From the sequence record OQ708376.1: a DNA stretch of 64,000 nt, one strand, 5' to 3'. The position numbers and the translations under genes were made by a program. The notes below the pieces were generated by a model. The model had not been told where the DNA came from and did no database searches. It worked only from the letters and a program-made list of their open reading frames with translations. This document shows, in pieces, positions 1 to 64,000 of this stretch. Each line of letters begins with the position of its first letter. Position 1 is the first letter of the stretch.

Positions 1-3
1 ATA

Positions 4-267
4 ATGGCACTTCGTATCTATGAGTGCCGATCCAATAGATACAATTTTTACCAGTACAGATTTGATAAAGAAGAATTTGATAGCATCAAAATGCTAAAGA
101 ATTTATGTAACAATAAAAAGAATATGCATATATCAGAATTTGTTGCTTTGTATTTTTATTTAAAAAGTTCATTGTATATGAACACGATGCAAAGATTCGA
201 TACTAGAATTAATGTATTCACCGATAAAGAATTTTATATATACGATAAATTCTTAGATAAGGTTTAA
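4..267 (+). CDS. hypothetical protein (may be 5'-truncated by the window edge)
   Basis: 87-aa ORF abutting the next gene; no recognised motif. Confidence 0.5.
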   Translation: MALRIYECRSNRYNFYQYRFDKEEFDSIKMLKNLCNNKKNMHISEFVALYFYLKSSLYMNTMQRFDTRINVFTDKEFYIYDKFLDKV

Positions 268-268
268 T

Positions 269-766
269 ATGACAACTGTTTATATTGATAAACGATTAAA
301 TTTATTGATTACCGATTCTAGAGTTACGTCAACTATACCACGAAACTTATTTGGTTTTTTCCCACTAAGACCAAAATATCAATATGGAGTTGTTAATCAA
401 AAAACTTTATATGTACATGACCGTTTATTCAGTGCTAGTGGGTCAGTAAGTGAAATTGATAAAGTACTGGATTGGTTAATTAATAAAGTACCAGTTATAC
501 CTGACAGAAAGTTAAGTTGCCATTGTGTGCTTCTTTCTAAAGATTATGTTATTCATATGATTTTAACTAAAGGAAAGTTTATTAAAAAACTTGAATATCT
601 ACATGAAGACTACACTTTCTTTATGGGAAGTGGTGGAGAATACATGGTAGATGCTGCTATTCATGAAGAACATACAACTTTATATGATAAAGTGTTTAGT
701 ACTTTCATGGATGTGCATAACCATGATTGCTTCACAGATGATAATATTAATGTATATCGATTTTGA
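269..766 (+). CDS. proteasome-beta/HslV-like Ntn-hydrolase fold protein
   Basis: N-terminal M-T-T, DSRVT motif, later GSGG and C-terminal DxxT, matching the T1/D17/K33/S129 pattern of Ntn proteases. Confidence 0.55.
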   Translation: MTTVYIDKRLNLLITDSRVTSTIPRNLFGFFPLRPKYQYGVVNQKTLYVHDRLFSASGSVSEIDKVLDWLINKVPVIPDRKLSCHCVLLSKDYVIHMILTKGKFIKKLEYLHEDYTFFMGSGGEYMVDAAIHEEHTTLYDKVFSTFMDVHNHDCFTDDNINVYRF

Positions 767-787
767 TTTCGTCATTAGGAGATGTAA

Positions 788-4136: not shown

Positions 4137-4164
4137 TTGACATAAGATATCAGTACTGTATAAT
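4137..4164 (+). promoter_or_regulatory. sigma70-type promoter, 16-bp spacer containing AGTACT
   Basis: TTGACA-taagatatcagtactg-TATAAT. Confidence 0.8.
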
Positions 4165-20526: not shown

Positions 20527-20527
20527 T

Positions 20528-47020: not shown

Positions 47021-47125
47021 GGCAGATAAGCCGTAGCCCATAGGGTGCGGGAGTGTATCTATAGAAAAATTAGTTTAGTATAGTTACAATTGTGCACCCG
47101 GTGGGTTAGCTGTTGTCATGGGGTA
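47021..47125. ncRNA. convergent pair of promoter-driven mini-RNAs (CCC-N3-GGG-TGC family)
   Basis: + promoter near 46984 and - promoter near 47153 face each other with no ORF between; 11 family copies in total. Confidence 0.5.
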
Positions 47126-47237
47126 TATTATACCAGTACTTGATAATGCTGTCAATACTTTTTTTTTACTATTCAGTACTGAAAACTATTTTTAAAAAGT
47201 ACTTGCAAACTATGTTTAAAGGCGTATAATGTTTTAC

Positions 47238-47312
47238 ATCAGGACGGGGAACGAAATAAGTAACTTCCCGTTAAGTAGCCCAGGAGTAAGGCACACGAAA
47301 AACTCCCCTGAT
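47238..47312 (+). ncRNA. candidate ~75-nt structured RNA, copy A (B 57150..57222, C 49793..49865)
   Basis: Starts at the promoter TSS; closing stem ATCAGG/CCTGAT, two inner hairpins, TAAGTAG linker, covariation among copies. Confidence 0.55.
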
Positions 47313-47380
47313 AAAATAGTTTGACAAATGTTTTTAAAAGCGTATAATACTTACATCAACTACTGAATGAGGGTTACAAA

Positions 47381-47992
47381 ATGAAAACTATCACTACTAC
47401 TACTTATGTTATGGCTTTTTCTGAATTGAACGCAGAACAACAAACGTCAGCTATCGAACTGGTTCGGGAACGTGAAAAAAACTCAAACGACAATTATTTT
47501 TCTGAAAGTGAAATTGAATACTATAAAGAAACAGTACTACCGGAATATGGCATTAATGACGCTGAAATACAATTCAGTGGTTTTTGGTCCCAGGGTGACG
47601 GTGCATCAATCAGTACTGACCACGTTGACGCAGTGAAGTTTTTACGCAAGGTAAGAGCATTAACTAAGTATCGCTCAATCCGTCACTTGCTGAATGAAGA
47701 TGATTTGGCGATGAGTGTAAAACGTTCGCACTCCCACTACTCGCATGAGAATACTGTAAGCGGGTACATTGAATCGGCTTACACTGATTTAACCGCAAAA
47801 CAAGAAACGTTAGTTAATGAGCTTGAGGAACTACTCACTGAAACTATTCGTGAATTGTCCCGCAAGTTGTACCGTGATTTAGAGAATGCATATGAGGATC
47901 AATTCACTACTGAAAACATTACGGCACTGATTGAGGGTAACGAATATCAATTCAATGTTATTGATGGCGTAGTAGAATCAATCGAATATTAA
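47381..47992 (+). CDS. acidic early protein with FSGFWSQGDGA motif
   Basis: GAGG RBS, own promoter, 203 aa. Confidence 0.8.
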   Translation: MKTITTTTYVMAFSELNAEQQTSAIELVREREKNSNDNYFSESEIEYYKETVLPEYGINDAEIQFSGFWSQGDGASISTDHVDAVKFLRKVRALTKYRSIRHLLNEDDLAMSVKRSHSHYSHENTVSGYIESAYTDLTAKQETLVNELEELLTETIRELSRKLYRDLENAYEDQFTTENITALIEGNEYQFNVIDGVVESIEY

Positions 47993-48084
47993 TTTAAAAA
48001 GTACTTGCAAACTAAGTTTAAAAGCGTATAATACTTTATATCGAGAGCGGGAATAGTTCCCGCTACTAATGAGGAATACTACAA

Positions 48085-49675
48085 ATGAATACTTTTACCT
48101 TCGCTCAATTGAACGCCCTGGATGTATTGTCTGATGCTTTGCGGGATGCAACTGAAAGCGGTTTATTTGACAATGTTGACATTCACCCTGATGTAATTAA
48201 TAATTTTTGTGATGCTATCGCAGAAGTACTGGAAGATCTAAAAAAATAATAGAAAGTACTTGCAATTAGTTTTCAGTACTGTATAATGGTTTACATCAAA
48301 GGGAGAAATGGTTCTCCCTGGTAATGAGGAAAATACAATGGCTAATATCACTACTCTTTCCCAACTGGAAGCACTGGTTAAATCTATGCGGGAACATGCT
48401 GACAAAATCGGCGTACAAGATCCAGCCGTTTGCTTCTGCGACGAATTGAATGATGATACCCTGGTAATAGCAGAAGTCCAGGACGTTTCTAACTATTCCT
48501 CGCGTTACACTGGCGGCGTAGCAAATAAAGGTGACTTCTGTTTATACCTTACAAAATAACAACGCGGGGAGATAATAACTCCCCGTTACTTTTTCAGTAC
48601 TGAATCATTTAATAGACGGATCTCGGCACCCGGTGGGTTAGTGACTGTTTCGTCTTGATGTAGTAATTATGCCAGTACTGGATGCACTTGTCAACAATTA
48701 TTTTCCAAATACTTTTTATTAAAATACTTGCAATTAGTTTTTAAACGCGTATAATGTTTTGCATAGGGGGAGCGGTTCCCCTGGTAACTAAGGAATAATA
48801 AAATGCTTGAACAAATCAAATCAACGTCTTCGAATGTAACGGGAACGGTAGCACACTTTACTAGTGATGAATCGCGGGGCGTTCCCTATTGTGCTGTACA
48901 TGTAAACACTGAGGGTAACTACTGGTTTACGGTTTACGGATCATATTCATTTGGACGGCCTGGACATCAAAAAATTCTGGATAAAGTACAACCAACGGGT
49001 AAAAATATCACTGCCGAAATGTTTTATAAAAAATCATAAAGTACTTGCAATTAGTTTTTAGTACTGTATAATATTTTACATCGCAAGGGGAAACGGTTTC
49101 CCCTGGTAACTAAGGATAATCAAATGAAAATTGCAATCATCGCCCTGGCTTTATCTGTTTCCTCTTTCGCTGTTAATGCGTCATTAGATGTAAGTAGTGA
49201 AAAATTCATTCAGTGCACTGTTGCAATGACCGATGAAAGAACTGGCGAGATTGTATTAAAGGATTTAGAGATCCAGCCGGAAGCATTTAAAAACGGCCCG
49301 TTCCATGAAGAAGACGAAAACGGTAGCACGACAATTTATTATGATGCCAGTACTAAACGCGGTTCGGTCACTGTAATGGATACCGAGAAAGTAACTCATA
49401 CCGGCGTTATTAATTGCCGTTGATAGATACTACGGGGTAACATCATGACTAAGCGAATTGTTTTACTTAACGAAAGCAGTACTACACAACTACTTAACGC
49501 CGTGCATTATGATATTGAAACGAGCGTTAATCTTATCAGTACTGTAGTTCTGTTGGACACTGGAAAGGTAGCCAATGATAAAGCGATTGCAGGTATACTA
49601 ACGGATCTTGTGCCTGGTAGCAGTGCACCAATAACGTTAAATGGTAAAGTGTTTAATATTTTACTCACTGATTAA
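48085..49675 (+). CDS. five early genes (48085..48249, 48338..48559, 48803..49039, 49124..49423 with signal peptide, 49445..49675)
   Basis: Most have their own promoter-hairpin-RBS; terminator AGCCCACC-T-GGTGGGCT-T run at 49682. Confidence 0.7.
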
Positions 49676-49908
49676 GTACATAGCCCACCTGGTGGGCTTT
49701 TTTGTTTTTGTAGTATCGTAGTACTGAGATACTTTGAAAATAGTTTTAAAAAAGTAGTTGACATTACCACAGAAAAGCGTAGAATGTATTACATCAAGAC
49801 GGGGAGCACTAAGTAGACCGCCAGTAAGTCGAACGAAAAACTGGACACGTCGAGAAAACTTTGATACACTAATAAACGTAAACTAAACTTTAATTGAGGA
49901 TTTATAAA

Positions 49909-50391
49909 ATGGCTAATGTAAAATCATTCATCAAAGCACTGGTAGCAAATGAAACTAACGTCGCGGCTGAGATCCTGGCTGAACTGGATAACGATACCAT
50001 GAAAGCGGTACGCAACAATTTTAACATTGCGTACAGTGAAGCTAAAGAACTGCAAGCCAAAAAGGTAGCAGAACTGGAAGAACAGAAAAAAGCCCGTGAA
50101 GCAGAACTACAAGCAACAATTGAAAGTATTCAGGCGGCAGTGTCTGGATTGGATCTGGAAGTGGTTGTAGAAATGGCACATAAAGCCCTGGCGGTTAAGT
50201 ACGGTGAAGATAAGCCGGAATCTAAACCTAAAAAATGGATTCAAGAACGTGTTACTGTAGTACTTGATAACGGTGAAGAACATTTGATTCCTGTACGCGG
50301 TAACTGCATTGCGGTAGTACTGGACGCTATCAAAGAAAGCGGTATGACTCGCGAGGAATGGATCGAAGCTCATCGCAAAGTTGAAGCATAA
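49909..50391 (+). CDS. H-NS-like protein with a degenerate DNA-binding motif
   Basis: N-terminal coiled coil, K/P linker, C-terminal DNGE...RG..AVV.DAI.E.G...EEW aligning by eye to H-NS ENGE...QGR.PAVI..AM.E.G...DDF. Confidence 0.5.
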   Translation: MANVKSFIKALVANETNVAAEILAELDNDTMKAVRNNFNIAYSEAKELQAKKVAELEEQKKAREAELQATIESIQAAVSGLDLEVVVEMAHKALAVKYGEDKPESKPKKWIQERVTVVLDNGEEHLIPVRGNCIAVVLDAIKESGMTREEWIEAHRKVEA

Positions 50392-50676
50392 CAATTAAAG
50401 TACTGAATCACTAGCCCACCTTAAACAGTGGGCTTTTTTGTGTCTGTAGTATTCCAGTCCACCAGCACCGCCTAGAATCGATTCTAACGCATTAAACTGA
50501 TTATCTGATACATCGCCCTAGCTGGTGGCGTTAAGGTCGTTAGAATGCGATTGAGAGCGTTTAAAGTATTTTGCAAAAAGTAATAAAAAGTACTTGCACG
50601 ATTAAGAGATTAGCGTATAATGTTTTACATCGAGAGGGGGAAACGGTTCTCCTTCCAAATCAAAGGAATCAAAACA

Positions 50677-51203
50677 ATGGCTATTATCATTACTCGCGTA
50701 TCTGGTACTACTGGCAACGAACAAGTAGTTGCAGTCATTACTAACAAGGCAGGTGCGGAATTGCAAAATGCAATGAATACCTGGGCCGTTAATGAGTTCG
50801 GTCAGTGGGCAAGTGTAGCATACATTGAAACCTATCAAGTGCCGTCGATTAGTTTAACTGATTTGGGCGTTGAGCGTATCCTTTGCCTGGATGAATTAAA
50901 TTAAAAAAAGTACTTGCAAAGTAAATCGAATAAAGTATAATACATTACATCAAGGGGAGAAATGATTCTCCCCACTACAAGGAAACTAAAATGGCTATCA
51001 TTACTAAAATCAAAGTTAACAAGACTATCGTTAAACTGGCAGAAGTGAAAGAAGGTTATAAAGTATCTTGGTGCGGTATGTATCGGACGTTCGCAGATAT
51101 AGATGATGCGATCAATTATTACAGTGACACGGTTAAAAACTTTGTTCGTGCTGATGTGGTTATGGCAGTGGCAACATATAAAGCAGCGAAAGAAAGTAAG
51201 TAA
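50677..51203 (+). CDS. two early hypothetical genes (50677..50904, 50991..51203)
   Basis: Own promoter cassettes and RBS. Confidence 0.7.
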
Positions 51204-51294
51204 AAATATTATCACAGTACTATTGACATAGTTTGATAGTACTGGCATAATAGATTTTATCAAGACGACACATATTAATTTAAGGAATACTAAA

Positions 51295-51618
51295 ATGGCT
51301 AAAACTATCATCAACACCGTTTCCCTGGCTGCAATCCATGCAATCAATGTTGACGGTAAACGTTGGACTGATTCATATGGCAATACTTATCATTCTTGTC
51401 ATGTAAGCGTTGAACTGGATAACGGCTTGAATGATCTGGCGGTTGAATCATTTACTTATGGCTATGAGGATGCATATCAACAAACGGCGGTATCACTCTT
51501 AAAGGAATCAGTAGACGGGCTTGATACTGTTGAAACCTCCCTCTATCGTTTGTGCAATGATCTTAATATCCCGTTGCATTGTACTGTACAGGATGTAAAA
51601 CGTAAAAAAGATCTTTAA
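51295..51618 (+). CDS. early protein, paralog of 57926..58249
   Basis: RWTD..GNTYHSC.VS...FTYGY...DVKRKKD shared. Confidence 0.8.
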   Translation: MAKTIINTVSLAAIHAINVDGKRWTDSYGNTYHSCHVSVELDNGLNDLAVESFTYGYEDAYQQTAVSLLKESVDGLDTVETSLYRLCNDLNIPLHCTVQDVKRKKDL

Positions 51619-51698
51619 TTAGCTTTACTTTATGCAGATACTTTGATATAGTGTCTGCATAGGGGAAAGAAATTAAATCAACTTAAGAGGAAAGTAAA

Positions 51699-52728
51699 AT
51701 GAAAAATATCAGTACTTTAATCGATGCAGGTACACATGTTCGTCGGTCTATGGTTGCAACCAGTTCTACAAAACAAGTAGCGAGCGGTTATCTTGTATTT
51801 GTGCACGATGGAAAACTCCTGGAACGTTCAATCAATTTTGATGTTAAAAACAATTGCCGTTTTATTATCTTTCGCCGTGAACAATATAAAATTGATTTGC
51901 CAGCGAAGCCCATTAGCGGGGCGTACAACGTGCAATCATTGTTTGAGCGTCAACCTTACACCTATTAATCAAAACATCGTTAGCGGTCGATTTAGGCCGC
52001 TTATATTGGGGATTATACCATGAACGTTAATCAAGTACTGAATGAGATCGAAAGCATCATTAAACCGATGAAGCGTACTGATGCTATGTTAACACCGGAA
52101 GAATGCCGCCTTTATGAGCGTTACAGCGTCGAACAAGTCCAGGCAATGGCTATGGCTACCCCAGCCGTTTCACCGCCTGAGAATGCGTTACAGGACGTTA
52201 CAGGGGATTATATCATTAATCCAGTACTAGGGAAGATGACTGCAATCACCGAAGATCAAAAAGACTACTTAAGCCAGTACTTAAAAGGTTAATTAATATG
52301 CTTACTGTACAGGATAAGATCGACATCTTAAAGGTTAATATGTATGTGATTGATGCCGTACCTGGTAAAGTATTTGCATACGATGATAGTACTGTAAGCG
52401 ATTTCTACTATAGCCAGGACGTGGGGGATCTTTCTGTACAGTCGGTTATTGAAAACGTAGTTAATGCAGCGTATGAGCATTTACTTTCAAATAGTACTTG
52501 CAATTAGTTTTTAAACGCGTATAATGTTTTACATGAAGGGGAGAAATGATTCTCCCCAATAACAGGAGAAACAAAATGAAACAATACAACGCTCGGTTTG
52601 ATGTTACTATCGGTAACGGCAAAGGTCAATTCTCTTTCAGTACTCGCCGCAGTTATACAGAAAACTTCCTGCGTAATTGTGCACTGACCGCCGCTCAAAT
52701 TAAACACTATTTTCAGGCTAAAAAATGA
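51699..52728 (+). CDS. four early hypothetical genes (51699..51968, 52020..52292, 52298..52507, 52576..52728)
   Basis: RBS and co-orientation. Confidence 0.65.
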
Positions 52729-53168
52729 AATCATTAGCTTATTACAGTTCGGCCCTGGTCGGTGCATTGATCGCGGCATTGTTAGTAACCTATCTATTCT
52801 TTATGGTGATTTAAATGAATCCAACAGGTTTAAACTATAAAAGTTGTTCTGCATTTACGAAAGCAAATAAAGCGAATGCACGTAAAGCGAAAGTACAGGA
52901 ATACATCAAGCAAGGCATGACGCGAAAAGCGGCGATTATAAAAGCTAAAAATAAATGAAAAAAGTGGTTGACTTCGGTCAGCCATTTTGTTATTATATAT
53001 TCATTGAGAGATAGCTCACTAGCCCACAGGGTGCAGGAGTGTATCTATTGTATGAGTATTGAGTACTGAAAACTATTTTTAAAAAGTACTTGCAAACTAT
53101 CTCAATAAGCGTATAATGTTTTACATCGAAAGGGGAAACGGTTTCCCCTGGTAATAAGGAAACAAATC

Positions 53169-53819
53169 ATGACTATCTCAATTGCTCAATCTAACTTTGA
53201 AAATGAAATCATCGCCCAGGCACTGCGTTTAAATGATGGTCGGGCCGAAATTAATTACGGTTTCAATTCAGGCGGTTGCGAAAAATATCAGTACTTTGTA
53301 ACGGCTGATGGCGGTGTCCTGGGTATCAATACAGTTATTGTAAACATCCAAAAAATTAATTTCAATGATCCAGACGATAGCCAGTTTTACATCACTGGCG
53401 TAGACGTGAACTATGAGGATGACTCACTAACTGATGATCACACTGGCGAGCGGTTAGAAAGTGCATACGGTGAAGATGATTATCAGTCCGGTCCAGAAGA
53501 TTTCGAATAATATAAAAAAATAGTTTGACAATAGATTATAGTACTGTATAATAGTTTACATCAAGGGGAGAAAAACTTCTCCCCACTAACAGAGAGAGAA
53601 AACAAAATGGCTAATATCCGGTCGAAATTAAAAAATGCAAAACAAGTTTTATTTTCAGATCATGAATACTTTAATAAAGATATTACAGGAGTTACAAGTA
53701 TCAAGGAAGTAAAAGAAAAAACCGGCGTTTTGTGTGATGTGCGATTAGTTGGAACATTTGGGAATAACGTGCTATATCGCTGCGGTGATTACAATTTTAC
53801 ACTGACTATCATTAACTAA
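53169..53819 (+). CDS. two early genes (53169..53510 acidic; 53607..53819)
   Basis: Own promoter cassettes and RBS. Confidence 0.7.
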
Positions 53820-54958
53820 AAATATTATCACAGTACTATTGACATAGTTTGATAGTACTGACATAATAACTTTTATCAACTACACTATTAAGGAATTAAA
53901 AATGGCTATCATCGCAAAAACTGAAATCGTTGGTCTGGATTCTATCATCATGACGTTTGAAGATCAAAAAGGTATGTATGTAGTTTCATATGGTGATTAT
54001 GTTCGGGAGTATGAAACGGTAGACGAAGCCTTTGAAAGTTACATTCGCCAGGTGAATAAAGCATACGACGATTACCGCTAAAATATATTACCAGTACTAT
54101 TAAAGATATTGACAACGTTTGATAGTACTGTATAATAAGTTTTATCAACAGTAGTTAACTTAACCTAAGAGAGAAATAAAATGATCGCACTGGATTCATT
54201 CATCGACGCAGTACTGGCAAAAACTGGCGAGGATCTGACCGCAGAACAATACGCAATGATCGAGCAATGCCAGCAAGACGGTAAATCGGTGAAAGATACT
54301 GTTAAGATTATCCGCAAGATGTAAGATTATAGCCCACTGGTTAACGCTGGTGGGCTTTAATTCATTACCCTATACAATGCCAGTACTAAACCGTTTATCT
54401 CGTTAGAATGCGTTACAGGACGTTTAACAATGATTAGCATGAAATCAGTACAAAAACAAATAGAAACATTATCAAAAATTAAACGTAAACAGTACTCCTT
54501 AGAATATACAATCAATGGTAACTATCATCTAATGAAAGAGAATAATTTTATAGTCATTGATGAATCATTGCAAATCATTAGTATAGTACTGAAAGCATTA
54601 ATCAATGACAGAAAAAAATTAAAATAAACTATTGACAATATCATCAAGTACTGGCATAATACTTACATCAAGACGAGAACGTCACTAACCCATAGGGTGC
54701 ACAAATGTAACTGTATAATATTGATCAAAAAATGATCTGATCAATACTTGATCAATTTGCGTAAAGTAGTATAATTCTATGCAGTTGGTTAGACGAAAGG
54801 TTATGATTAGTAGTGCAAGTGTATAAAAATTTTCATGGTGTATCGTTTCGCACATATGGGGATGAATATGTGGTATCATGTGGATTGGAAAAAGTAAGAA
54901 CAAGTAATATTATTGTCGCATTACAGTACTATAGTATTTTTATAATGAGGTTAAAATA

Positions 54959-55216
54959 ATGGCTGTAGGATTCGCGAAAGATGGGGCCGAACAAGACGAG
55001 ATTAACGCAGTGATTCAGGCCGCCGTTAACCACGCTAGAAAGCAAATTAACGCACAAATAGAATCACTGATACATTGCCTCGACTGCGGCGATATAATCC
55101 CTGAGAATCGACGCCAGGCCGTTAAGGGATGTAAGTACTGCATAACTTGCCAGGAGGATCATGATAGTACTTTTAAACGTCCCCCGCGTAATTGTTGGCA
55201 TAGATCTATGAGATAA
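54959..55216 (+). CDS. DksA/TraR C4 zinc-finger protein (YbiI-like)
   Basis: MAVGFAKDGA N-terminus; CxxC-G..IPE.RR.A..G-CxxC..CQ. Confidence 0.85.
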   Translation: MAVGFAKDGAEQDEINAVIQAAVNHARKQINAQIESLIHCLDCGDIIPENRRQAVKGCKYCITCQEDHDSTFKRPPRNCWHRSMR

Positions 55217-55279
55217 AAAGTATTGACAGTACTGAAAGATAGTGTATAATGTTTTATATCTTAACTGAGGATAGAAATC

Positions 55280-55636
55280 ATGGGAATACAACATATCACG
55301 CGTACTACTGACAATGGCGAGATCACTGGTTATCAAGTACAGGGCAAAGTAGCACAATTGCAGTACTGGTTTGTTAAACGTGGAATCATTGCACCGGATC
55401 TTGATTATGACCGTGTAGCGTTTATTGATTCTCTTTATGTTGATCCTGATAGTCGGGGCAATGGTGAAGGTAACGAATTAATGAATGCCTTTATTGATGC
55501 CGCCGATGATTCAGATTGTATCATTTTAGAATGCGATACGGGAGAAGATAACGCCTTTAATCTTAAAGAATGGTACGAAGGTTTCGGATTCGAGGTACTG
55601 ATCGATAGTGAATATCCTATCATGATTTTATCATAG
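55280..55636 (+). CDS. GNAT-family acetyltransferase
   Basis: IDSLYVDPDSRGNGEG (motif A) and WYEGFGF (motif B). Confidence 0.8.
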   Translation: MGIQHITRTTDNGEITGYQVQGKVAQLQYWFVKRGIIAPDLDYDRVAFIDSLYVDPDSRGNGEGNELMNAFIDAADDSDCIILECDTGEDNAFNLKEWYEGFGFEVLIDSEYPIMILS

Positions 55637-55708
55637 TACTTGCATTTAGTTTTCAGTAGTGTTATAGTACTTACATCAAGGGGAAACATCTTCCCCTACT
55701 AAGAGGAA

Positions 55709-56550
55709 ATGAAAATGGAAAACTTATCAAGTATTTTAGTACAAGATGATTTCGGTAATCCTGGAAGTGCTATCATTGTTCGGGGTAATAAAGCAACATT
55801 TGTTATTGCTGGTGGACCTGTACAGCGTAGCATTAAAAACAATGCCGTTACTATTAATAATGTACGCTATCGCTTAGATAAAGAATTGATTCATAAACTG
55901 TAATATTAATTTAATAGAGGATAACAATAAATGTACATTCATACTACTATCACAAAGGAAGTCCGTTGCCAGTTCGAAAGTATTCCGGGCGTATGTTTCA
56001 TCACTGGTACGTTTTCCCCTGGTGATCGTGATAATCCAGTACTGTTACAATTACGCCATCCATCATGGGATAAAGCATTTGATCTACCGTTGAATGAATT
56101 CGCAACTACTGCTGAAAAGTACATTAAAAATATTCGCGAGAATGATCGACTATTCATTAATGCTTTTAGTGATTCCGCGTTAAGCGAGATCCACGGTGTA
56201 TTGGTTGCAATCATGGAATCAATGGAGAAAACTAAATTCAAACAAGGTGAATAAAAACTATTGACAAGATAATCTAGTACTGTATAATAAGTTACATGAA
56301 GGGGAGAAATGATTCTCCCCACTGAGAGGAAAGAAAAATGCAAGGTCAACTAATCGTTCGTAAATGGTCTGATACTAACGCTAAACCGTGGGATGTACAA
56401 TACATCGGACCGGATGGGGTATCACGTTATCAGCCTGGCGTAACGCATAGTACTGAGCAATATGCCGCCGCTCACCGCGAACGCCTGTTAGAATCCATGA
56501 AACAGGGATACGGTGAAAAATTCATTCAAGATCATTGGCTGAAAGATTAA
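55709..56550 (+). CDS. three early hypothetical genes (55709..55903, 55931..56254, 56338..56550)
   Basis: GAGGA RBS; promoter cassettes. Confidence 0.7.
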
Positions 56551-57291
56551 TATAAGGAGTACAGCTTATGCAAATGAATCCGATGATTATTGTTTTAGCT
56601 GTACTTATGATCATTCATGCAATAGTAGAAGTATTAACGCAATCAGGAGTAATAAAATGATTCAAGTAGAATTATCAGTACTGAAAGATCTGTTTTATCG
56701 GTTAGGTACTACTGGCGAGTATCCTAAAAGTGATACCGCAAAACTTTTTGTATCACTCGACTTATGGCAACGCGAACAATTAGTAATGTCCTGGCGTAAA
56801 GGTAAAGCAGATAGCGAGGTGAAAGCATGAAAGAATTCTTATTCGAAGTAGTGTTTCAAGGTGTCGGTAGTAACCAACTGATTCGCTCAAGTGGTTACAA
56901 TGTTAACCAGGCATGGAATAACATTAAACAAATGTACCCGAACGCTATCACCTATCGCAACCCGAAACAAGTTTAAAAATAATTGAAAAAGGGATTGACT
57001 CCGGTCAGTCCCTTTGCTATTATATACGCATAGAAACAAATCAGCCCACAGGGTGCATAAATGTATCTATTGTTTGCTGGTGGCTAGTACTGAAAACTAT
57101 TTTTAAAAAAGTACTTGCATTGTACTTAGAATCAAGTATAATGTTTTACATCAGGACGGGGAACGAAACAAGTAACCCCGTTAAGTAGTCCAGGAGTAAG
57201 ACATAAGAAAACCTCCCCTGATAAAATAGTTTGACAATAGAAAGTAAACGAGTATAATACTTACATCAACCACTGATAAGGAAACATTAAA

Positions 57292-57567
57292 ATGCGGATT
57301 CTACTGACAGCTAACGAAATCGAACAAGTACTGACTACTAACCTGGAAGACTGGAAACGTGAAGCAGATATCCAGGCGGTTCAACGGCTTAACGATGAGT
57401 TAACGCCGGATGACTTAAGCAAGATTGTAGATCCTCAATTCTACGAAGATATCCACGACACCGCGTTAAGCGTCGAGGATGTACTAGATAAGCACTACAT
57501 TGATATTGATTTGCAGGTTTACGGTCGTAAAAACTTTATCACTATTCACGACATTTACAATAATTAA
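57292..57567 (+). CDS. small highly acidic early protein
   Basis: About 20 D/E versus 8 K/R in 91 aa. Confidence 0.75.
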   Translation: MRILLTANEIEQVLTTNLEDWKREADIQAVQRLNDELTPDDLSKIVDPQFYEDIHDTALSVEDVLDKHYIDIDLQVYGRKNFITIHDIYNN

Positions 57568-57653
57568 GTATTGACAAAGTATCTTAGTACTGTATAATAG
57601 TTTACATCGAGAGGGGGAATGGTTCCCCTCCTAACAAAGAGAGAGAAATAAAA

Positions 57654-57836
57654 ATGGCTAAATGCACTATCTGTAAGAAAGAAATCGTATTAGTTCCAAG
57701 TGCCCGTGAACGTGCCGCTCGGTTCGGTGGCAAAGCGTCAGACTATACAAAAATGTTTACTACCCATGCAGCTTGCCAGGTAGCAAAACGTTCACAAGAA
57801 AGCGTAGAATTAATGCGTAAACTTTCCAAAAAATAA
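57654..57836 (+). CDS. small Zn-binding early protein
   Basis: CxxC...HxxC. Confidence 0.7.
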   Translation: MAKCTICKKEIVLVPSARERAARFGGKASDYTKMFTTHAACQVAKRSQESVELMRKLSKK

Positions 57837-57925
57837 GTATTGACAAAGTATCTTAGTACTGTATAATAGTTTACATCAAGCGAGGGGAATGGTTCCCCTC
57901 CTAACTAAAAGAGAGAGAAATAAAA

Positions 57926-58249
57926 ATGGCTATGATCCTTACCCAGAAAGTAGAACTGAAAATTGTAACCTCCTTTGACATTAAAGTTAATCGCTGGACT
58001 GATCGGAACGGTAACACTTACCACTCTTGCTACGTGTCCGCGTTAATTGGCGACCGCTGGGAAGACTTGGGACATGAAACCTTTACTTACGGTTACGGTA
58101 CACAAGGAGAATACACGGGCTTGGAGATCATTAAAGAAACCGTTATAGGTTTCAACCCGAAAGAAAAAGTTATTCACCGCATCGAAAAAGAGATTAACAA
58201 AGAAATAACAGTTCGCTACTACGATGTAAAACGTAAGAAAGACATGTAA
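57926..58249 (+). CDS. early protein, paralog of 51295..51618
   Basis: Shared motifs listed under 51295. Confidence 0.8.
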   Translation: MAMILTQKVELKIVTSFDIKVNRWTDRNGNTYHSCYVSALIGDRWEDLGHETFTYGYGTQGEYTGLEIIKETVIGFNPKEKVIHRIEKEINKEITVRYYDVKRKKDM

Positions 58250-58344
58250 TAGAATCCATTTAAAGTACTATTTGACATTGCCCAGATAGTACTTTATAAT
58301 AGACTCTAACTTGTAGTACTAACTCAACTAATAGGATGTATACC

Positions 58345-58740
58345 ATGATTACTAAATTCTACGCTACCCGTGAAGCTGCCCGTATTGTTGCACGCGAGGA
58401 AGGAGCAGCATTTAAAGACATGGGCAAAGATGCACCGAAAGGTCAACGCTGGGCCGTACAGTTCAAAGAAATCTCTGATATCGTGAATTCACCGGAGCCA
58501 GTACTAACAGCAGCAGAACTAAAACGAGCGGATTTACTGGCGGCAGTACTTAACGCACAAGATGAATTTATCGCTGATTCTGATATCAAAGTACAGACAA
58601 ACCATACCGCTTGGACTCACGCGGATCACCTGGCAAACCTTAAGCGTCCAAGTGAACTGGTTCGCAACCAGAAAGAGATCCGACACGACCGTAAGGGTAA
58701 TCGTGTAACAGTATACAGTAAACGCCGCCAGGTTATCTAA
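58345..58740 (+). CDS. early protein, paralog of 46368..46634 with a longer middle segment
   Basis: Shared N- and C-terminal motifs. Confidence 0.8.
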   Translation: MITKFYATREAARIVAREEGAAFKDMGKDAPKGQRWAVQFKEISDIVNSPEPVLTAAELKRADLLAAVLNAQDEFIADSDIKVQTNHTAWTHADHLANLKRPSELVRNQKEIRHDRKGNRVTVYSKRRQVI

Positions 58741-58802
58741 TAACTTGCAGTACTAACAACACGGCGGGATCAGTTCCCGCCTTTTTTATAGGATAAACTA
58801 AA

Positions 58803-59057
58803 ATGATTAAGGTACAACTATCTAAAGATAATATCTTGCGGGTACACTATAAAGCACCACAGAGAATCATCACAAAGGCCGTACAGCTTGCTAATGAGTT
58901 TATTAATGGTAACCTATTACCAAGGAAGTTAAGCAACGGAAAACTGCGTGTAATCGATGTAGACACTAACAACAGAATAGTAATTGAGAACACAGGAAAG
59001 ATAAACCTATATGAACACCAACAATATAATAAGAAAATAAAACTAATATCACGTTGA
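58803..59057 (+). CDS. possible ParE/RelE-like fold protein
   Basis: P.RI..KAV.L...F..G...R.L...I.V...R.V...H..YNK pattern. Confidence 0.35.
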   Translation: MIKVQLSKDNILRVHYKAPQRIITKAVQLANEFINGNLLPRKLSNGKLRVIDVDTNNRIVIENTGKINLYEHQQYNKKIKLISR

Positions 59058-59110
59058 CAGTACTCAATTGTTTTAGTACTATGTACATATACCAACACGG
59101 GAGAAACAAA

Positions 59111-59630
59111 ATGAAATTATCTAAAATCGAAAAGAAAACTATTGATGAAGCAGTTAAGCACGGTTATACCTTTCGTAATGATTCACATTTTACCAATTTT
59201 CAACAAGGGTATCGTACTATTAAAAAACTCATTGACAAAGGTTTATTAGTTGAAGTCAATAACGGCAATGGTATTGAGTATCAACCAACACAAGACGCAT
59301 TTTATTTTAAGAAATATAATATTATCTAATTGACAGTACTCAAATGTTTTAGTACTATATGTACATACCAACACGGGGAAAAACAAAATGATTACTTTAG
59401 AAAAACGTATCAAAGAAACTACATCGCTGGTGGAACTGTTAACAGTACTGAAATGCCGTACTACTCGGTTTAGTACACCGGACTTTATTAATATGGTTGA
59501 TGTTAATGGTCGCTATCGTATCACGGTCGAACAAGGAGCGGCGAAAGTATTCAGTACTAAAAACACTAAGGAAGTGATTCACGCTGTAAGTGTTAAAAAA
59601 GTAGTTGCCATTGATAGTAAAGTACTGTAA
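59111..59630 (+). CDS. two small basic early genes (59111..59329, possible wHTH; 59388..59630)
   Basis: Near-duplicate upstream promoters; TIKKLIDKGLL in the first. Confidence 0.65.
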
Positions 59631-59661
59631 GATAGTTTCATTAACTCAAGGAGAACATGCA

Positions 59662-60246
59662 ATGCGTAATTATACTAAATTCATCCGTACCCTGTCAGAA
59701 ATGGAAACCAACAAAGAGATCCTTTCAGCTTGTCGGTTAGCTGGTCTGGAGATCATCGGTGCGGGTTCTTCCCGTATTGTATTCGCTTTAAATGATCGGT
59801 TAGTGATTAAGGTCGCGAATTGTGATGCGGGTGTAGAACAAAATGAAACTGAATGTAAGGTATGGAATTTTTTAGATTATGACCGCCCTCAATTGAAACA
59901 GTACTTTGCAAAGGTGCATATGCATTTATGCGATCCTGATAATATGTTTATCGTTATGGATCGGTTGAGTACTGCAAGTAAAGGCAGTGTAAAGCACGTA
60001 AACGCGTGCAATGAATTAAAGTACAATATTAAACGTAATGCCATTGAACGCCAGCACCGCTTTGCTGATGCACTACAACACGTTGATGATACATTATCAA
60101 CACTAACGATAAGAGATATCAGAAAACAGAATATCGGCCAGGATCGTAATGGCCTTATTAAAGTACTTGATTACGGTTTAACCCGCAATATCTGGAATCA
60201 GTACTATAAAAAGCGTGATGTAGAAGCAAGTAAGGTAACACGATAA
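59662..60246 (+). CDS. Ser/Thr protein kinase-like
   Basis: IGAGSSR.V, VIKVA, QNETE, DIRKQNIG, LDYG. Confidence 0.8.
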   Translation: MRNYTKFIRTLSEMETNKEILSACRLAGLEIIGAGSSRIVFALNDRLVIKVANCDAGVEQNETECKVWNFLDYDRPQLKQYFAKVHMHLCDPDNMFIVMDRLSTASKGSVKHVNACNELKYNIKRNAIERQHRFADALQHVDDTLSTLTIRDIRKQNIGQDRNGLIKVLDYGLTRNIWNQYYKKRDVEASKVTR

Positions 60247-60467
60247 AAAAGATTAAAAAAGGGATTGACTCCGGTCAGTCCCTTTGCTATTATATATTCA
60301 TTGAGAGATAACTCACTGACCCATAGGGTGCGGAAGTGTATCTATTATATAAGTATTCAGTACTGAAAACTATTTTTAAAAAAGTACTTGCATTGTACTT
60401 AGAATCAAGTATAATGTTTTACATAGAGAGGGGGAAATGGTTCTCCCTGGTAATAAGGAATAAAATC

Positions 60468-62500
60468 ATGACTACAATGACTTGCATTTACGCTTCCAAT
60501 CTTCTGAATGATGCGGCCTTTAATGTTGATTCAGAATATCAATGTTATCGGGATGAAAATAAAAAAGTTTTTGTAGTTGATAATAATGGTTTCCATATTG
60601 AATTACAATCCGGTTTCACTGGTGTTGATGGTAAATCAGTGTGGGGCGTACAGGATGATAAAGGCACATATCATTTTAAACGTAATTAAGTATTGACAAA
60701 GTATATCAGTACTGTATAATAGTTTACATCAAGGGGAGAATAGTTCTCCCCGATACTAAAAGGAAACAAAATTATGTCCAGCTACTCCGCTACTATGATC
60801 ATTAAAGATATGAACGGTAATCCTACTTCTGCTGGTGGATCATTTGGAAACATTAATTTAGATGGTCGGTTATCCATGCAATCAGCCATCGATGCAGCGA
60901 AAGAAGTTTTTAAGAATGAATGTACTGTTAGTAAGATGGATTATATGGGATTCGCTATCGAGAAAACTAATCGTTTTGTGAACTACAAAAATCCACTGAT
61001 GATTGATACTAACCTGAAAGCTAACGAAGTGGGGTACTTATTATGACAGTAGAAGAAGTTAAAAAAGTACTGGCAGTACTACGCTATCATAATCATTGCA
61101 AGGTGAAGAATGATCCTGATTATGTTGATTCATCCCTGGAGGAAGACACATTAAACGCAATAAGCCATATGCAAACATTAGCAAAGCGTATGACCGAAAA
61201 GAATAGACCGGACTATATCGGAAATAAAATTTAAAAAGTACTTGCATTGTAGTTAGATTAACGTATAATGTTTTACATAGAGCGGGGGAATAGTTCTCCC
61301 GCCAGTCCAGGAGATACACCATGAACACTATCGAAATCACTATCAATGCACACGTATACGACAACGTAGTACTGCAAACTACTATGACCGCTAATGATAC
61401 CAGTACTTTGCGGAATACCGTTGTAAGTGCTGTATGTGCTGCAATCGGTGATGTAGCCCTGGAAAATGCAGAACACATCAACAACGGTTTCACTATGTGC
61501 AAACGTGATAACGCAAAACATATCATCTTAGAAGGTTACGGCGGTGTAGAATATAATCTTTATATGAAAAAAGTACTTGCATAATAACTAAAACAAAGTA
61601 TAATGTTTTGCATAGGGGGAGATATCCTCCCCCACTAAAAGGAGTAATAAAATGGCTAACTTTGATGAACTGATGCGGGAAGTAGCTAACCTGGCAGAAG
61701 AGAAGAAATCATTCGATTCTATCTATAACACCGCTCACCGTGATTCAGTACTGGCATGTACTCAGGATCAAAAAGATGAACTAATCGCCACCTATCATGA
61801 AGCATGGAAGTACTACCGACAATGGGAGAAAGAAGAAAGTGAGTCTACCATTGACGGCCTCAATAATCTAATCTAAAAGTTTTATTTCAGTACTATTGAC
61901 ATAGCTTGATAGTACTGATGTAATAACTTTACTAACTACAAGGGGAAACATAATGGAACAGTTCACACAATATCGGGTAAATCCTCAAGCTATGGCCTAC
62001 GTAGAAGACCATAAAACATTACCAGTACTGCAACCAGTTAAAGGCCATATCTATCGTGCTATGTCGTGGAGTACTGCACAGGATGGATATAAAACCGTTG
62101 CCGTGGGTATGTATTGCGGGAATGGTGAATGGTTTGATCCAAATAATCCGGTAGCCATTGACAGTACTGAAAAAATGAAATGGGCCGACTACATCGAAGA
62201 TATTTCATAAAACTATTTGACAGTACTAACCAGTAATGTATAATGTTTTACATAGAGCGGGGGAATAGTTCTCCCGTCAATAGTTTGGAGTAAAACATTA
62301 TGTCTATCGCTATCGCCCTGGTTGAAGTACTGAAAGAAGCTAAAGCCAACCTTATCGATGTACAGATTAAGGAATTACAAAATGGTTTAATCGGCTGTAC
62401 TTGTACCGCTGGTGGAGCGGCAGACTATCGGGAATTCGAATCACTTGAATCGATGGTCCGTTATCTTACCATGATCGTAGAAGATTGGAGAATCATCTAA
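60468..62500 (+). CDS. seven small early genes (60468..60689, 60774..61046, 61043..61234, 61321..61584, 61652..61876, 61953..62210, 62300..62500)
   Basis: Nearly all have their own promoter, hairpin and RBS. Confidence 0.7.
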
Positions 62501-62746
62501 CAAAAAAGAATAAAAAAAGGGATTGACTCCGGTCAGTCCCTTTGCTATTATATACTCATAGACAAAAACTAGCCCACTGGGTGCAGGAGTGTATCTAAAA
62601 TATATAGTTAATAACGGTGAGTAACTATCTGCTGGTGGGGTGAAAACTATTAATAAAAAAAGTATTGACAAAGTATATCAGTACTGCAATAATGTATCTC
62701 GTAGGGCGGCAATGGTGCGACGGCCCACAAAGTTAGGAGATTCAAA

Positions 62747-63848
62747 ATGAGTACTTCAATCGCTATCGTTAAAGCTTTCATCCGTACCAATGTTTCATCT
62801 GTATTCATCGACGGTCTGGATCGGGAAGTAGAATACTCAATCATTATCGCACAGACTGCAAACGGTGCTCGGTATATCCTTAATGATAGTGAAGCAAATC
62901 ACTACTACTTCACTAAAGCTACTGGCTTTAAACGCATCGATGCTGACGTAGTATACACTAAGATGAATAAGCTGGTAGACAAGATTAACGCGAAAGGTAC
63001 TATCGATTTACAGTACTGGACCGAAACCGATCCAGAATATGGATCTCACCGCTACCTGAATCCAGGTATTAAAATGTAAAAAGTACTTGCATAGTACTTA
63101 GAATCAAGTATAATGTTTTACATAGAGAGGGGGAAATGGTTCTCCCTCCTAAATTAAGGAGTTTTATCATGACCTTCTCAATCAATTCCTTCGCTGACGT
63201 TTTAGTACTGGCTCGGACTTTCGGTAAAGATGCACTGGAGTACGCTGTAAGTAATGGTACTATCCAACCGGAACAGTGCCGCATCATTGGAAACTGCAAA
63301 CGTTGGGCGGTATCCAATACTATTGCACTGGAAAACTTCCACGATGGCAACAATGAATATTCTGTTGATGTAGTATTCGAAGCCGTTGATCTCGGCGGTA
63401 TCTATAATACTAACCTGAATGATGTGCGTATCGTTCGCACGGGGTTCGGTGCTTATGATGTATCTATTCGTGAAGCTATGAACACCGGATACATTAGCAA
63501 GGACTTACTTGCTCACATCATGCAGCTGTGTACGGAACGTAACGAAGCACGCACTATCTTAGGACTGTAAGCGTTACACATCACCAAACATCATAGGCCG
63601 CCTTGTAGCGGCCTTAACTATATCAGGAGGGCATACATATGTTCTATACAGTATACAGCGTTCTAGGTACTATTGCAGGCGTACATGATAACGTCAATGA
63701 TGCTATGCGTACAGTACTGCAACAGGTTCCACTAAAGCCTAAGACCATTAAGCAGATGACAGCACGACTAACCAGGGCGACCGATGGCGTGGAAGTATGG
63801 CAGGACTACGGGGATACACAGATAATCGTTAGCGTAACGAAGGATTAA
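62747..63848 (+). CDS. three early genes (62747..63079, 63169..63570, 63639..63848)
   Basis: AGGAG/GGAGG RBS; promoter cassettes. Confidence 0.7.
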
Positions 63849-64000
63849 TGCGTAAAGGGATCTAGTACTGATTCAGAAAAAAGTCAAGGCGTTTTTAAAA
63901 TTATGCGTTAAAAAAATGCATAGGTAATCCCTTGACTTTTTTGAAATAAAAGGGATTGGACTATGGCAAAATGCGTAGGGGGCTAAAGGGCGGGTAACCT

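Follow-up and report, generated by a model that had tools for sequence, protein, structure and literature searches.

Avoidance of palindromes is a textbook trait of phage genomes. Against this rule, a palindrome of the restriction type, AGTACT, is the commonest hexamer of a 350 kb phage genome, and the question raised by the DNA described here is what maintains the word and what reads it. The window (the whole stretch of 64,000 nucleotides that was analysed) corresponds to the final 64 kb of the genome of Escherichia phage vB_EcoM_CRJP21, a Rak2-like jumbo phage (366 kb, Asteriusvirus). Its G+C content is 35.4%, not the ~34% first estimated. An AGTACT excess was not mentioned in the literature searched on this phage group. 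The word provides an experimental handle on early-gene regulation in large phages that lack both hypermodified bases and a nucleus-like compartment, as well as on the possible organisation or marking of DNA by such phages and on their survival of ScaI-type restriction. Two features define the setting:

1..64000, unstranded: AGTACT, 280 copies, 151 in 1-43848 (3.4/kb) and 129 in 43849-64000 (6.4/kb).
43849..64000, plus strand: right copy of the direct terminal repeat, 20,152 bp, identical to record positions 1-20152.

The terminal repeat contains small early genes, every one of them preceded by a separate promoter of the sigma-70 type (strong TTGACA-16/17-TATAAT matches). With a near-consensus promoter and a G+C-rich 5′ hairpin ahead of each short gene, it resembles the early stem-loop cassettes of the T4 type. 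To our knowledge those cassettes have not been described with an iterated palindrome, and they cannot account for AGTACT in coding regions. In a relative, a terminal repeat of ~21 kb was confirmed experimentally (PMC13070987).

The original prediction held that AGTACT is massively over-represented, and the counts bear this out. The 280 copies in the window compare with 21.0 ± 4.6 in dinucleotide-preserving shuffles (maximum 32), and AGTACT ranks first among the 4096 hexamers, both in the window and genome-wide (888 copies against 99 expected, or 9x). The first 6 kb, where about 19 copies had been counted by eye, hold 20, with ~2 expected. Markov simulations of the window yielded 21 ± 5 copies at order 1 (a 13x excess), 46 ± 7 at order 2 and 104 ± 10 at order 3. 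Even at order 4, proposed as a null under which the enrichment might disappear, 100 runs gave 227 ± 15 with a maximum of 257, so that the excess survives. This last null errs on the conservative side, since most occurrences of AGTAC and GTACT, the 5-mers within the word, come from AGTACT itself. The codon-preserving nulls agree: annotated genes of the window contain 167 copies, against 49.4 ± 5.8 when synonymous codons are shuffled (3.4x) and 22.9 ± 4.4 when codon order is shuffled. These genic copies are divided 77/31/59 among the reading frames, each of which is enriched about 3-4x. A further 111 copies are intergenic, and the high density claimed for both kinds of DNA was found in both (3.3/kb coding, 8.1/kb intergenic). 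The excess therefore has the features of a HIP-type sequence, an exact palindrome in excess under composition-aware nulls in all coding frames and in non-coding DNA. Composition, codon usage and repeats as its source are largely refuted by the codon and order-4 nulls together with the genome-wide counts.

Across the genome the density follows gene class, with 6-7/kb in the terminal repeat, 2.5-3.8/kb in early regions and 1.1-2/kb in late regions; late genes distant from the repeats still show the excess. The mean spacing is one copy per ~390 bp throughout. Short-range spacing, for which a phasing analysis had been suggested, was Poisson, and no phasing was seen. The specificity is sharp. Exact AGTACT is 9x enriched, and every one-mismatch neighbour stands at 2.2x or below (AGTATT, for example, at 1.23x). 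AGGACT is the sole depleted neighbour, in line with a general GACT deficit.

The pressure for AGTACT is strong enough to bend codon choice and even amino-acid choice. Ser-Thr dipeptides are encoded as AGT-ACT in 54% of cases against 16% expected, and the dipeptides ST (1.44x) and QY (1.45x) are the two most over-represented, with VL at 1.34x; ST, QY and VL are the three reading frames of AGTACT. The flanks are symmetric. C at -1 and G at +1 occur at ~45% of sites and the opposite bases, G at -1 or C at +1, at 8%, a pattern consistent with a symmetric factor that recognises duplex DNA rather than with an RNA motif. AGTAC is followed by T 67% of the time even in stretches with all genes on one strand.

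The word had also been placed directly before the -10 element and over the -35 element of promoters. All 11 places named for the former were recovered within 2 nt and one more was found at 54124; the motif AGTACTGTATAAT lies at 4152, 8466, 19053, 44229, 48275, 49060, 53540, 54124, 56276, 57586, 57855 and 60708. The form fused to the -35, AGTACTTGCA, occurs 18 times in the window. Representative promoters and control elements are as follows:

4137..4164, plus strand: promoter TTGACA-16-TATAAT, AGTACT at 4152 directly before the -10 (register -19 to -14).
19038..19065, plus strand: promoter of the same class (AGTACT adjoining the -10), AGTACT at 19053.
45958..45990, plus strand: -35-fused promoter AGTACTTGCAA-N16-TATAAT, one of the 18 AGTACTTGCA sites.
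47172..47230, plus strand: promoter module in which TTCAGTACTGAA at 47172 precedes by 23 bp the AGTACT fused to the -35 at 47198.
48255..48287, plus strand: two-site promoter; one AGTACT, at 48255, is fused to the -35 (AGTACTTGCAA), the other, at 48275, adjoins the -10, and 20 bp separate them.
49040..49072, plus strand: second two-site promoter, AGTACT at 49040 and 49060.
43600..45585, unstranded: non-coding control region over the start of the terminal repeat, 19 AGTACT in 2 kb, many within (A)TTCAGTACTGAA(T).
45382..45395, unstranded: perfect 14 bp palindrome ATTCAGTACTGAAT, the fullest extended form.

Measured from the -10, AGTACT starts 7-9 bp upstream in 26 cases in CRJP21 and 27 in CBB, and 27-30 bp upstream in 23 cases in each. 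In promoter coordinates these registers are ~-19 to -14 (adjoining the -10) and ~-39 to -34 (fused to the -35), both inside the RNA polymerase footprint. The palindrome is thus found where a global operator would be expected, at fixed footprint positions of many promoters in both phages. Among strong plus-strand promoter matches, 38/80 have AGTACT in the footprint; the late-gene region, scanned for the same promoter registers, showed none. The module at 47172 is repeated in layout (TTCAGTACTGAA and then a -35-fused AGTACT) at 53062/53085, 57086/57110 and 60359/60383, and many intergenic copies belong to such repeated promoter modules. An extended palindrome is present in a subset of sites. Nineteen sites in the window match at least 6 of the 8 flank positions of ATTC|AGTACT|GAAT, against 2.2 expected, and they cluster in the control DNA of the terminal repeat. 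Since coding-region sites hold almost no information past the ±1 positions, the extended form may partly reflect duplication of promoter modules.

The signal extends to the whole clade. Observed and expected AGTACT counts were 114/10.8 in RaK2, 114/14.4 in GAP32, 112/15.7 in CBB, 83/11.9 in an Eneladusvirus and 92/14.1 in Munch, and these five phages combine the excess with a purge of other palindromes. AGTACT is depleted in PA5oct (3 against 14.4 expected) and in the T4-like coliphage ELT3 (0 against 7.2). Between GAP32 and CBB, 64% of AGTACT sites are conserved against a background of 39%, and 89% against 53% where the encoded residues are the same; between CRJP21 and GAP32 the values are 22% and 12%. 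Most positions turn over between genera at a constant density. These comparisons indicate that AGTACT is kept by selection in at least five related lineages (three named genera, an Eneladusvirus and the unclassified Munch). The AGTACT-rich phages all infect Enterobacterales.

The original prediction had set the excess against the usual avoidance of palindromes by phages, and this inversion is borne out. In the CRJP21 genome 23/64 six-base palindromes are absent, as is GCGC, and CGATCG occurs once in 344 kb; restriction-site avoidance is thus extreme for these words and reversed for AGTACT. In the host E. coli K-12 AGTACT is ~43 times rarer (0.06/kb against 2.58/kb in the phage), and GCGC, which the phage lacks, occurs at ~7 per kb. 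High AGTACT density together with the absence of GCGC offers a simple metagenome signature for the clade. AGTACT itself is locally missing from two islands of 5 and 7.5 kb, which contain none against 13 and 19 expected at genome density. The second island contains 40 copies of AGTACA, one base away, on the plus strand and none on the other; the block is on the sense strand, next to the repeat, and remains unconverted in both CRJP21 and 121Q. The empty islands and the unconverted AGTACA suggest active local avoidance, that is, that the full palindrome has a consequence.

The original reading of AGTACT as a genome-wide cis code thus stands as far as a selected, DNA-level signal located in promoters at fixed registers is concerned, while a role in packaging found no support. 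The signal is real, selected, symmetric and clade-wide, with an extended palindromic subset. As the best explanation we tentatively favour a positively selected iterated palindrome that is recognised, in duplex DNA, by a factor of two-fold symmetry, most probably a dimeric DNA-binding protein of the phage. The copies at immediate-early sigma-70 promoters would act as operators that switch the promoter class as a block, joined in many cases by a third, longer TTCAGTACTGAA site ~23 bp further upstream. Through the hundreds of core-only sites the factor would occupy the phage chromosome along its full length, and this loading would mark or organise phage DNA as distinct from the site-poor host chromosome. 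We infer that the factor is a protein rather than an enzyme, and that it represses or times the early promoters; the intragenic sites would serve marking or organisation. Several observations fit the symmetric binder less well. Six-base sharpness is unusually strict for a regulator and closer to what methyltransferases or nucleases show; a regulator has no obvious need of ~700 copies within genes at the cost of altered proteins; and the strand-oriented AGTACA island is not predicted by a symmetric binder. Pfam searches of the 48 terminal-repeat proteins detected no DNA-binding domain, and CRJP21 has no homologue of the one HTH regulator annotated nearby in CBB.

Several known systems share part of this pattern. 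KorA and KorB of IncP plasmids recognise palindromes reused at the -35 or -10 of many promoters, which gives block control, with extra copies elsewhere; the sites are about a dozen, of 12-13 bp, and the repressor is known. AGTACT is likewise reused at -35 and -10 and has further copies off promoters, but these include hundreds of intragenic six-base copies. Dam GATC signals (SeqA, MutH; the IS10 and Mu mom promoters) show that methylation state can gate promoter hexamers. GATC resembles AGTACT as a short palindrome found once per few hundred bp and in promoter hexamers, but it is not strongly over-represented in E. coli. The sites of SlmA (SBS, GTGAGTACTCAC), Noc (NBS), MatP (matS) and ParB (parS) are palindromes bound by dimeric proteins and scattered for marking or organisation, as proposed here. 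They measure 12-16 bp and occur in tens of copies per chromosome, whereas AGTACT recurs every 390 bp and lacks SlmA flanks. Chi, KOPS and DNA uptake sequences share a selected density, turnover of positions and biased codon choice; they are asymmetric and strand-oriented, whereas AGTACT is palindromic and only the AGTACA island is oriented. HIP1 of cyanobacteria (GCGATCGC) is also a short exact palindrome in many-fold excess in coding and non-coding DNA. Between cyanobacterial genomes, HIP sites are retained above background level, a sign of selection rather than neutral replenishment (PMC5861425), and AGTACT behaves in the same way. The function of HIP1 is unknown, although methyltransferase and chromosome-structure links have been proposed (PMC4390886). 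AGTACT is not HIP1 proper, being a different word in a different organism: a hexamer rather than an octamer, A+T-rich, in a virus whose genome is purged of palindromes, and at fixed promoter registers. It provides a tractable viral system for the HIP1 puzzle, which has long resisted solution.

Methylation is a less probable explanation. On this view an orphan methyltransferase of the phage would act on AGTACT, most plausibly making N6-methyladenine. ScaI-type protection would lift avoidance, the mark would then serve as a signal, for instance by gating early promoters on fully methylated incoming DNA versus new DNA, and the word would be iterated as proposed for cyanobacterial HIP. The six-base sharpness suits such an enzyme, and position alone would suit a methylation-gated promoter, as AGTACT overlaps the -35 or adjoins the -10, just where methylation could alter sigma-70 contacts. 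Unmodified coliphages avoid the word (ELT3, above), so the clade must somehow tolerate ScaI-type enzymes. Two methyltransferases are encoded in the CRJP21 genome, one of the Dam family (PF05869) and one of the C5 type (PF00145), the specificities of which are not readable from sequence; no AGTACT-specific enzyme was found, and the characterised Dam-family members we know of act on GATC. Protection alone would leave AGTACT at a neutral frequency, not at a 9x excess with reshaped dipeptides, and extended palindromes of 12-14 bp are unexpected for a six-base enzyme. Sites with methylcytosine after A are McrBC targets. A cytosine-methylated AGTACT would be such a target, yet the close relative Sharanji grows on E. 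coli K-12 MG1655 (PMC11895373). RaK2 DNA was reported to be partly methylated, with bisulfite detecting methylcytosine only in CpG context (data not shown in that paper, PMC3622015), and AGTACT contains no CpG. Cytosine methylation of AGTACT is thus unlikely. HIP sequences do co-occur with methyltransferases specific for them (PMC4390886).

A broader scheme, which we regard as improbable, is a two-word code of self and host in nucleus-less jumbo phages with unmodified DNA. A phage protein reading the dense AGTACT would protect and organise the phage chromosome and set its timing, a phage nuclease would destroy host DNA by targeting GCGC, and the oriented AGTACA block would be a strand-specific version of the signal.

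Quite improbable, in our judgement, is that AGTACT is the site of a phage nicking or cutting endonuclease that seeds recombination-dependent replication and terminal-repeat recombination in the 350 kb genome, density being selected and AGTACA giving strand-specific nicks. It would account for the sharp hexamer specificity, for selection on density rather than position with Poisson spacing, for the peak density in the terminal repeats and for the oriented AGTACA block beside the repeat, which is hard to explain otherwise; relatives also carry T4-type recombination genes. The fixed promoter registers are left unexplained, no candidate enzyme was found, and the label ‘restriction enzyme’ in the record is unsupported. 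Virion DNA of fEgEco12 digests as predicted for an intact linear genome and is not fragmented, an assay to which single-strand nicks are invisible (PMC13070987).

A functionless neutral drive, for example with mismatch repair or gene conversion biased in favour of AGTACT, is very unlikely. It would suit Poisson spacing and turnover at constant density, and a repair model of this kind was proposed for HIP1 (PMC4390886). No one-mismatch neighbour is drained, however: AGTATT is not depleted and AGGACT tracks the GACT deficit. The empty islands, the 40 AGTACA left one step away, the promoter registers conserved across genera and the density gradient by expression class all argue against it. Repair drive, composition and SlmA binding are disfavoured.

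It is highly improbable that the word acts in RNA as AGUACU, or that it simply follows from codon usage, from amino-acid content or from the duplication of cassettes with promoters and terminators. The sense-strand orientation of the AGTACA block would fit the former, and the many intergenic copies in repeated promoter modules and one amplified terminator module the latter. Against these readings, codon-preserving nulls do not remove the excess, which is seen in each reading frame and also in late genes that lie well away from the repeats. An RNA motif is opposed by the symmetric flanks, the predominance of T as sixth base even with one-strand genes and the many sites upstream of transcription starts.

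Barely credible is titration of the host nucleoid-occlusion protein SlmA, which would block division and explain the filamentation seen in a relative; the SlmA consensus GTGAGTACTCAC has an AGTACT core (PMC3020112), every AGTACT-rich phage infects Enterobacterales, and Sharanji-infected cells filament with phage DNA spread through the cell and no division inhibitor known (PMC11895373). The SlmA site is a 12 bp palindrome, GTRAGYRCTYAC, that requires G1, T2 and a purine at position 3 (PMC3020112). The genome contains zero full sites, and one SlmA-type half flank is depleted (17/888 against 58 expected).

AGTACT had also been noted in terminator arms. It is present there, but these are not independent events, as one paralogous module has been copied ~8 times. 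Further copies of the GCCAGTACT-CT-GTACTGGC module listed first below lie at 33360-33378, 34613-34632, 35877-35895 and 37087-37105. Two hairpins were recorded in addition:

32138..32156, minus strand: intrinsic terminator GCCAGTACT-CT-GTACTGGC plus T-run, after an RCC1-like paralogue.
27732..27755, minus strand: hairpin ATCCAGTACTTAATAGTACTGGAT, AGTACT in both arms.
44371..44404, plus strand: hairpin with CAGTACTG at both stem ends.

AGTACT was found 280 times in the window, compared with 21.0 ± 4.6 in dinucleotide shuffles, and ranked first among hexamers, above all words made only of A and T. Simulated Markov chains gave 21 copies at order 1, 46 at order 2 and 104 at order 3. The order-4 model already includes the 5-mers AGTAC and GTACT, whose own counts come mostly from the hexamer, and it gave 227 ± 15 (maximum 257 in 100 runs). 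The observed count lies above this maximum and the excess thus survived the order-4 test. Annotated genes held 167 sites, against 49.4 ± 5.8 when synonymous codons were shuffled within genes and 22.9 ± 4.4 when codon order was shuffled, and enrichment was about 3-4 fold in each of the three reading frames. The original prediction of a massive over-representation in both coding and non-coding DNA was borne out by these counts and by the densities (3.3/kb in coding and 8.1/kb in intergenic sequence), and the excess was kept under both of the nulls proposed with it, the order-4 chain and the codon-preserving shuffle.

Compared with OQ708376.1 (366,301 bp), the record of Escherichia phage vB_EcoM_CRJP21 (here CRJP21), an Asteriusvirus whose kin include 121Q, PBECO4, G17 and Sharanji, the window matches positions 302302-366301 at 100% identity. 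Since window 43849-64000 and record 1-20152 are identical, the window ends in a direct terminal repeat of 20,152 bp, of which it carries the right copy, and whole-record counts include window 43849-64000 twice. A repeat of about 21 kb was confirmed experimentally in the relative fEgEco12 (PMC13070987). In the unique sequence, about 344 kb, AGTACT was counted 888 times against 99 expected, and all 10 kb bins across the genome were enriched. Density was 6-7/kb in the terminal repeat, 2.5-3.8/kb in the early region and 1.1-2/kb in the late and structural regions. An artefact of composition, codon usage or repeats is ruled out by Markov orders 1-4, by the synonymous and codon-order shuffles, and by the whole-genome and late-gene counts.

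AGTACT also reshapes the proteome. Ser-Thr dipeptides were encoded as AGT-ACT in 54% of cases, compared with 16% expected from codon usage. The two most over-represented dipeptides, QY (1.45x) and ST (1.44x), are two frames of AGTACT, and VL, its third frame, stood at 1.34x.

The relatives sampled share the trait. RaK2, GAP32, CBB, an Eneladusvirus and Munch represent related lineages, and PA5oct and ELT3 served as comparison phages.

AGTACT and GCGC in relatives and comparison phages (counts on 41-50 kb samples)
RaK2: AGTACT 114, expected 10.8; GCGC 0
GAP32: AGTACT 114, expected 14.4; GCGC 0
CBB: AGTACT 112, expected 15.7; GCGC 0
Erwinia pEa_SNUABM_19 (Eneladusvirus): AGTACT 83, expected 11.9; GCGC 0
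Salmonella Munch: AGTACT 92, expected 14.1; GCGC 0
Pseudomonas PA5oct (large terminase 43% identical): AGTACT 3, expected 14.4; GCGC normal
T4-like coliphage ELT3: AGTACT 0, expected 7.2; GCGC normal

The AGTACT-rich, GCGC-free signature was present in every enterobacterial Rak2-like lineage among those sampled. That phages usually avoid palindromic restriction sites, as the original prediction had it, agrees with the depletion of AGTACT in PA5oct and ELT3; the counts indicate that this avoidance is inverted specifically in the Rak2-like clade. In codon alignments of GAP32 and CBB orthologues (83% nucleotide identity), 64% of sites were kept, compared with 39% of other hexamers, and where only unchanged amino acids were considered the values were 89% and 53%. 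Between CRJP21 and GAP32 orthologues (64% identity) 22% of sites were kept, compared with 12%, so that from one genus to another about four positions in five turn over at an unchanged density. Judging from these alignments, site conservation is above background.

Many other palindromes have been purged. Of the 64 six-base palindromes, 23 had no copy in the genome, among them CCATGG (46 expected), TGGCCA (42), CTGCAG (35) and GGTACC (31), and AGTACT alone exceeded 1.6x. GCGC was absent from both the window (97 expected) and the genome (175 expected); its density in E. coli is 6.8 per kb. One possibility is a phage-encoded, GCGC-specific nuclease directed at host DNA. At 100-150 kb in PA5oct, TCTGCA/TGCAGA and ATGCAG/CTGCAT were about 4x over-represented and CTGCAG was found 15 times against 4.7 expected, a palindrome absent altogether from the Rak2-like phages.

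AGTACT was found in two fixed promoter registers. In the first (26 cases) it begins 7-9 bp before the -10 hexamer (AGTACTGTATAAT, AGTACTGGCATAAT), and in the second (23 cases) it begins 27-30 bp before the -10 and is fused to the -35 (AGTACTTGCAA). In promoters with both, the sites are 20 bp apart (48255/48275, 49040/49060). CBB had the same two registers, with 27 and 23 cases, and none were found in a late-gene region. Of the strong promoter matches on the + strand of the window, 38 out of 80 had AGTACT within the footprint. All positions at which AGTACTGTATAAT had been predicted directly before a -10 proved correct within 2 nt, a twelfth copy lying at 54124, and the predicted overlap with the -35 was recovered as 18 copies of AGTACTTGCA in the window. 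A longer palindrome, (A)TTCAGTACTGAA(T), encloses the core at 43600-45585, where the repeat starts, and also some 23 bp upstream of several sites fused to the -35. Nineteen window sites matched at least 6 of the 8 extra positions, against 2.2 expected.

In a second promoter class the -35 (TTGACT) lies within a terminator stem and AGTACT is absent. AGTACT had also been predicted in terminator arms, where it is real but belongs to a single module amplified along with the RCC1-like gene family. Throughout the terminal repeat, small genes stand in a row, and every one has a 5′ hairpin and a sigma-70 promoter close to the consensus.

Promoter- and terminator-related features (window coordinates)
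788-1753, + strand: phage sigma-70-family factor gene, with regions 2, 3 and 4; 34% identity to CBB_513
10222, 13465, 13648, 15225, 16310, 20805, 22087, 24045, 52966: terminator-promoter modules, a hairpin GGGTTGACTTCGGTCAGCCC with the -35-like TTGACT in its stem, then TTTTTGCTATAAT
56988, 60258, 62516: further terminator-promoter modules
28411-39433, - strand: about eight RCC1-like repeat proteins with a common upstream module and a GTAC-armed terminator
47037, 53023, 54689, 57045, 60320, 62573 (+ strand), 47082 (- strand): conserved element of about 24 nt, CCCAYAGGGTGCRNRARTGTATCT

The CCCAYAGGGTGCRNRARTGTATCT element recurs downstream of terminator-promoter modules, where the terminal repeat has long stretches between genes. 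Rfam returned no match for it and no RNA family in the whole window. The sigma-70-family gene is ‘hypothetical’ in OQ708376.1, which gives the sigma label to another gene. Product names in this record are displaced from their genes, and GenBank labels were not used as evidence. The ‘endonuclease V’ label is at 17357-17695 and the true endonuclease V at 20865-21380; the genes labelled ‘major capsid protein’ and ‘terminase’ have implausible sizes.

The flanks of AGTACT were symmetric, with C before and G after in about 45% of sites and G before and C after in 8%. When all sites were pooled, almost no flank information was found past ±1. The suggested check for phasing found none, as inter-site spacing was exponential (mean 388, median 268) and the sole short-range excess, at 20-24 bp, was due to the promoter modules.

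Outside the window, next to the inner end of the left repeat, two segments (record 20153-25194 and 27768-35321) had no AGTACT, against about 13 and 19 sites at genome density. The first had 10 TGTACT and one AGTACA. In the second, AGTACA occurred 40 times on the + strand and TGTACT not once, against about 3 expected; the AGTACA copies lay in all frames and had diverse flanks but the same C...G preference, and 15 of the segment's 17 Ser-Thr pairs were AGT-ACA. 121Q has an identical architecture, with 36 of the 40 AGTACA kept and none converted to AGTACT. Paralogy is rejected as the origin of the AGTACA block, since its genes lack close paralogues and the block was absent from CBB. The AGTACA segment actively avoids the complete palindrome. 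The islands and the unconverted AGTACA in 121Q argue against a uniform mutational drive. A sink of very-short-patch-type repair is likewise rejected, as no one-mismatch neighbour of AGTACT was depleted as predicted (most stood at 1.2-2.2x) and AGTACA sites remain unconverted.

The analysis shows AGTACT to be a DNA signal under selection: it is symmetric, is shared across the clade, stands at fixed registers in promoters and at a subset of sites is extended to a longer palindrome. We infer that it is recognised by a phage-encoded symmetric factor. The reading we tentatively favour, although with less than even confidence, is a DNA-binding protein that would act as an operator factor at immediate-early promoters and, on the genome-wide sites, as a mark or organiser. 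It is favoured because some palindromes are extended, sites fall within the footprint of the polymerase, density follows a gradient, and AGTACT is 43-fold denser in phage than in host DNA. The strand orientation of AGTACA is not accounted for by a symmetric reader.

The search for the reader among the 48 terminal-repeat proteins found no DNA-binding domain in Pfam, the matches being a DksA/TraR zinc finger, a ParE-like toxin domain, a GNAT acetyltransferase and domains of unknown function; PHROGs returned only unknown-function families. The DksA/TraR, ParE-like and GNAT proteins, encoded within window 45586-63848, plausibly have host-takeover functions. The HTH_37 regulator of CBB has no homologue in CRJP21, and the ‘restriction enzyme’ and ‘endonuclease V’ of GenBank were discarded as displaced labels. 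This negative search and the sharp six-base specificity, which appears enzyme-like, keep two enzymatic explanations live. An orphan methyltransferase acting on AGTACT is unlikely, though the genome encodes both a Dam-family and a C5 methyltransferase, and a nicking enzyme, for which the same specificity speaks, is less probable still. Cytosine methylation of AGTACT in particular is unlikely because of a bisulfite report on RaK2 and the growth of a relative on a McrBC-proficient K-12 host. In a congener, ten enzymes cut the DNA as predicted, which excludes bulk hypermodification there. AGTACT is also the core of GTGAGTACTCAC, the site bound by the nucleoid-occlusion protein SlmA of E. coli (PMC3020112), and a close relative of CRJP21 causes filamentation and has no known division inhibitor (PMC11895373). 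Titration of SlmA is nevertheless rejected, as no complete SlmA site occurs in the genome and half flanks of the SlmA type were three-fold depleted (17 vs 58 expected).

The nearest known phenomenon is HIP1, the highly iterated palindrome of cyanobacteria, which is hyper-abundant and kept by selection (PMC5861425) and whose variants track cognate methyltransferases (PMC4390886). Like HIP1, AGTACT shows the statistical excess and the conservation of this class. Unlike HIP1, it is viral, a hexamer, embedded in promoters and set in a genome from which palindromes have otherwise been stripped. No mention of the excess, or of a link to ScaI or RsaI, was found in the papers searched on these phages.

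Two tandem arrays flank the start of the terminal repeat.

Tandem arrays (window coordinates)
41857-43585: about nine small ORFs in tandem (each about 60 aa), repeating every 187 bp or so, with MHKEYY-like starts
44627-44754: an 8 bp unit, NNACGGCT (e.g. AGACGGCT, AAACGGCT, GGATGGCT), repeated about 16 times in tandem

The first region looks non-coding because its ORFs are unannotated in the record. The second array, which begins about 800 bp within the repeat, has the appearance of an iteron array and could be part of an origin or packaging site.
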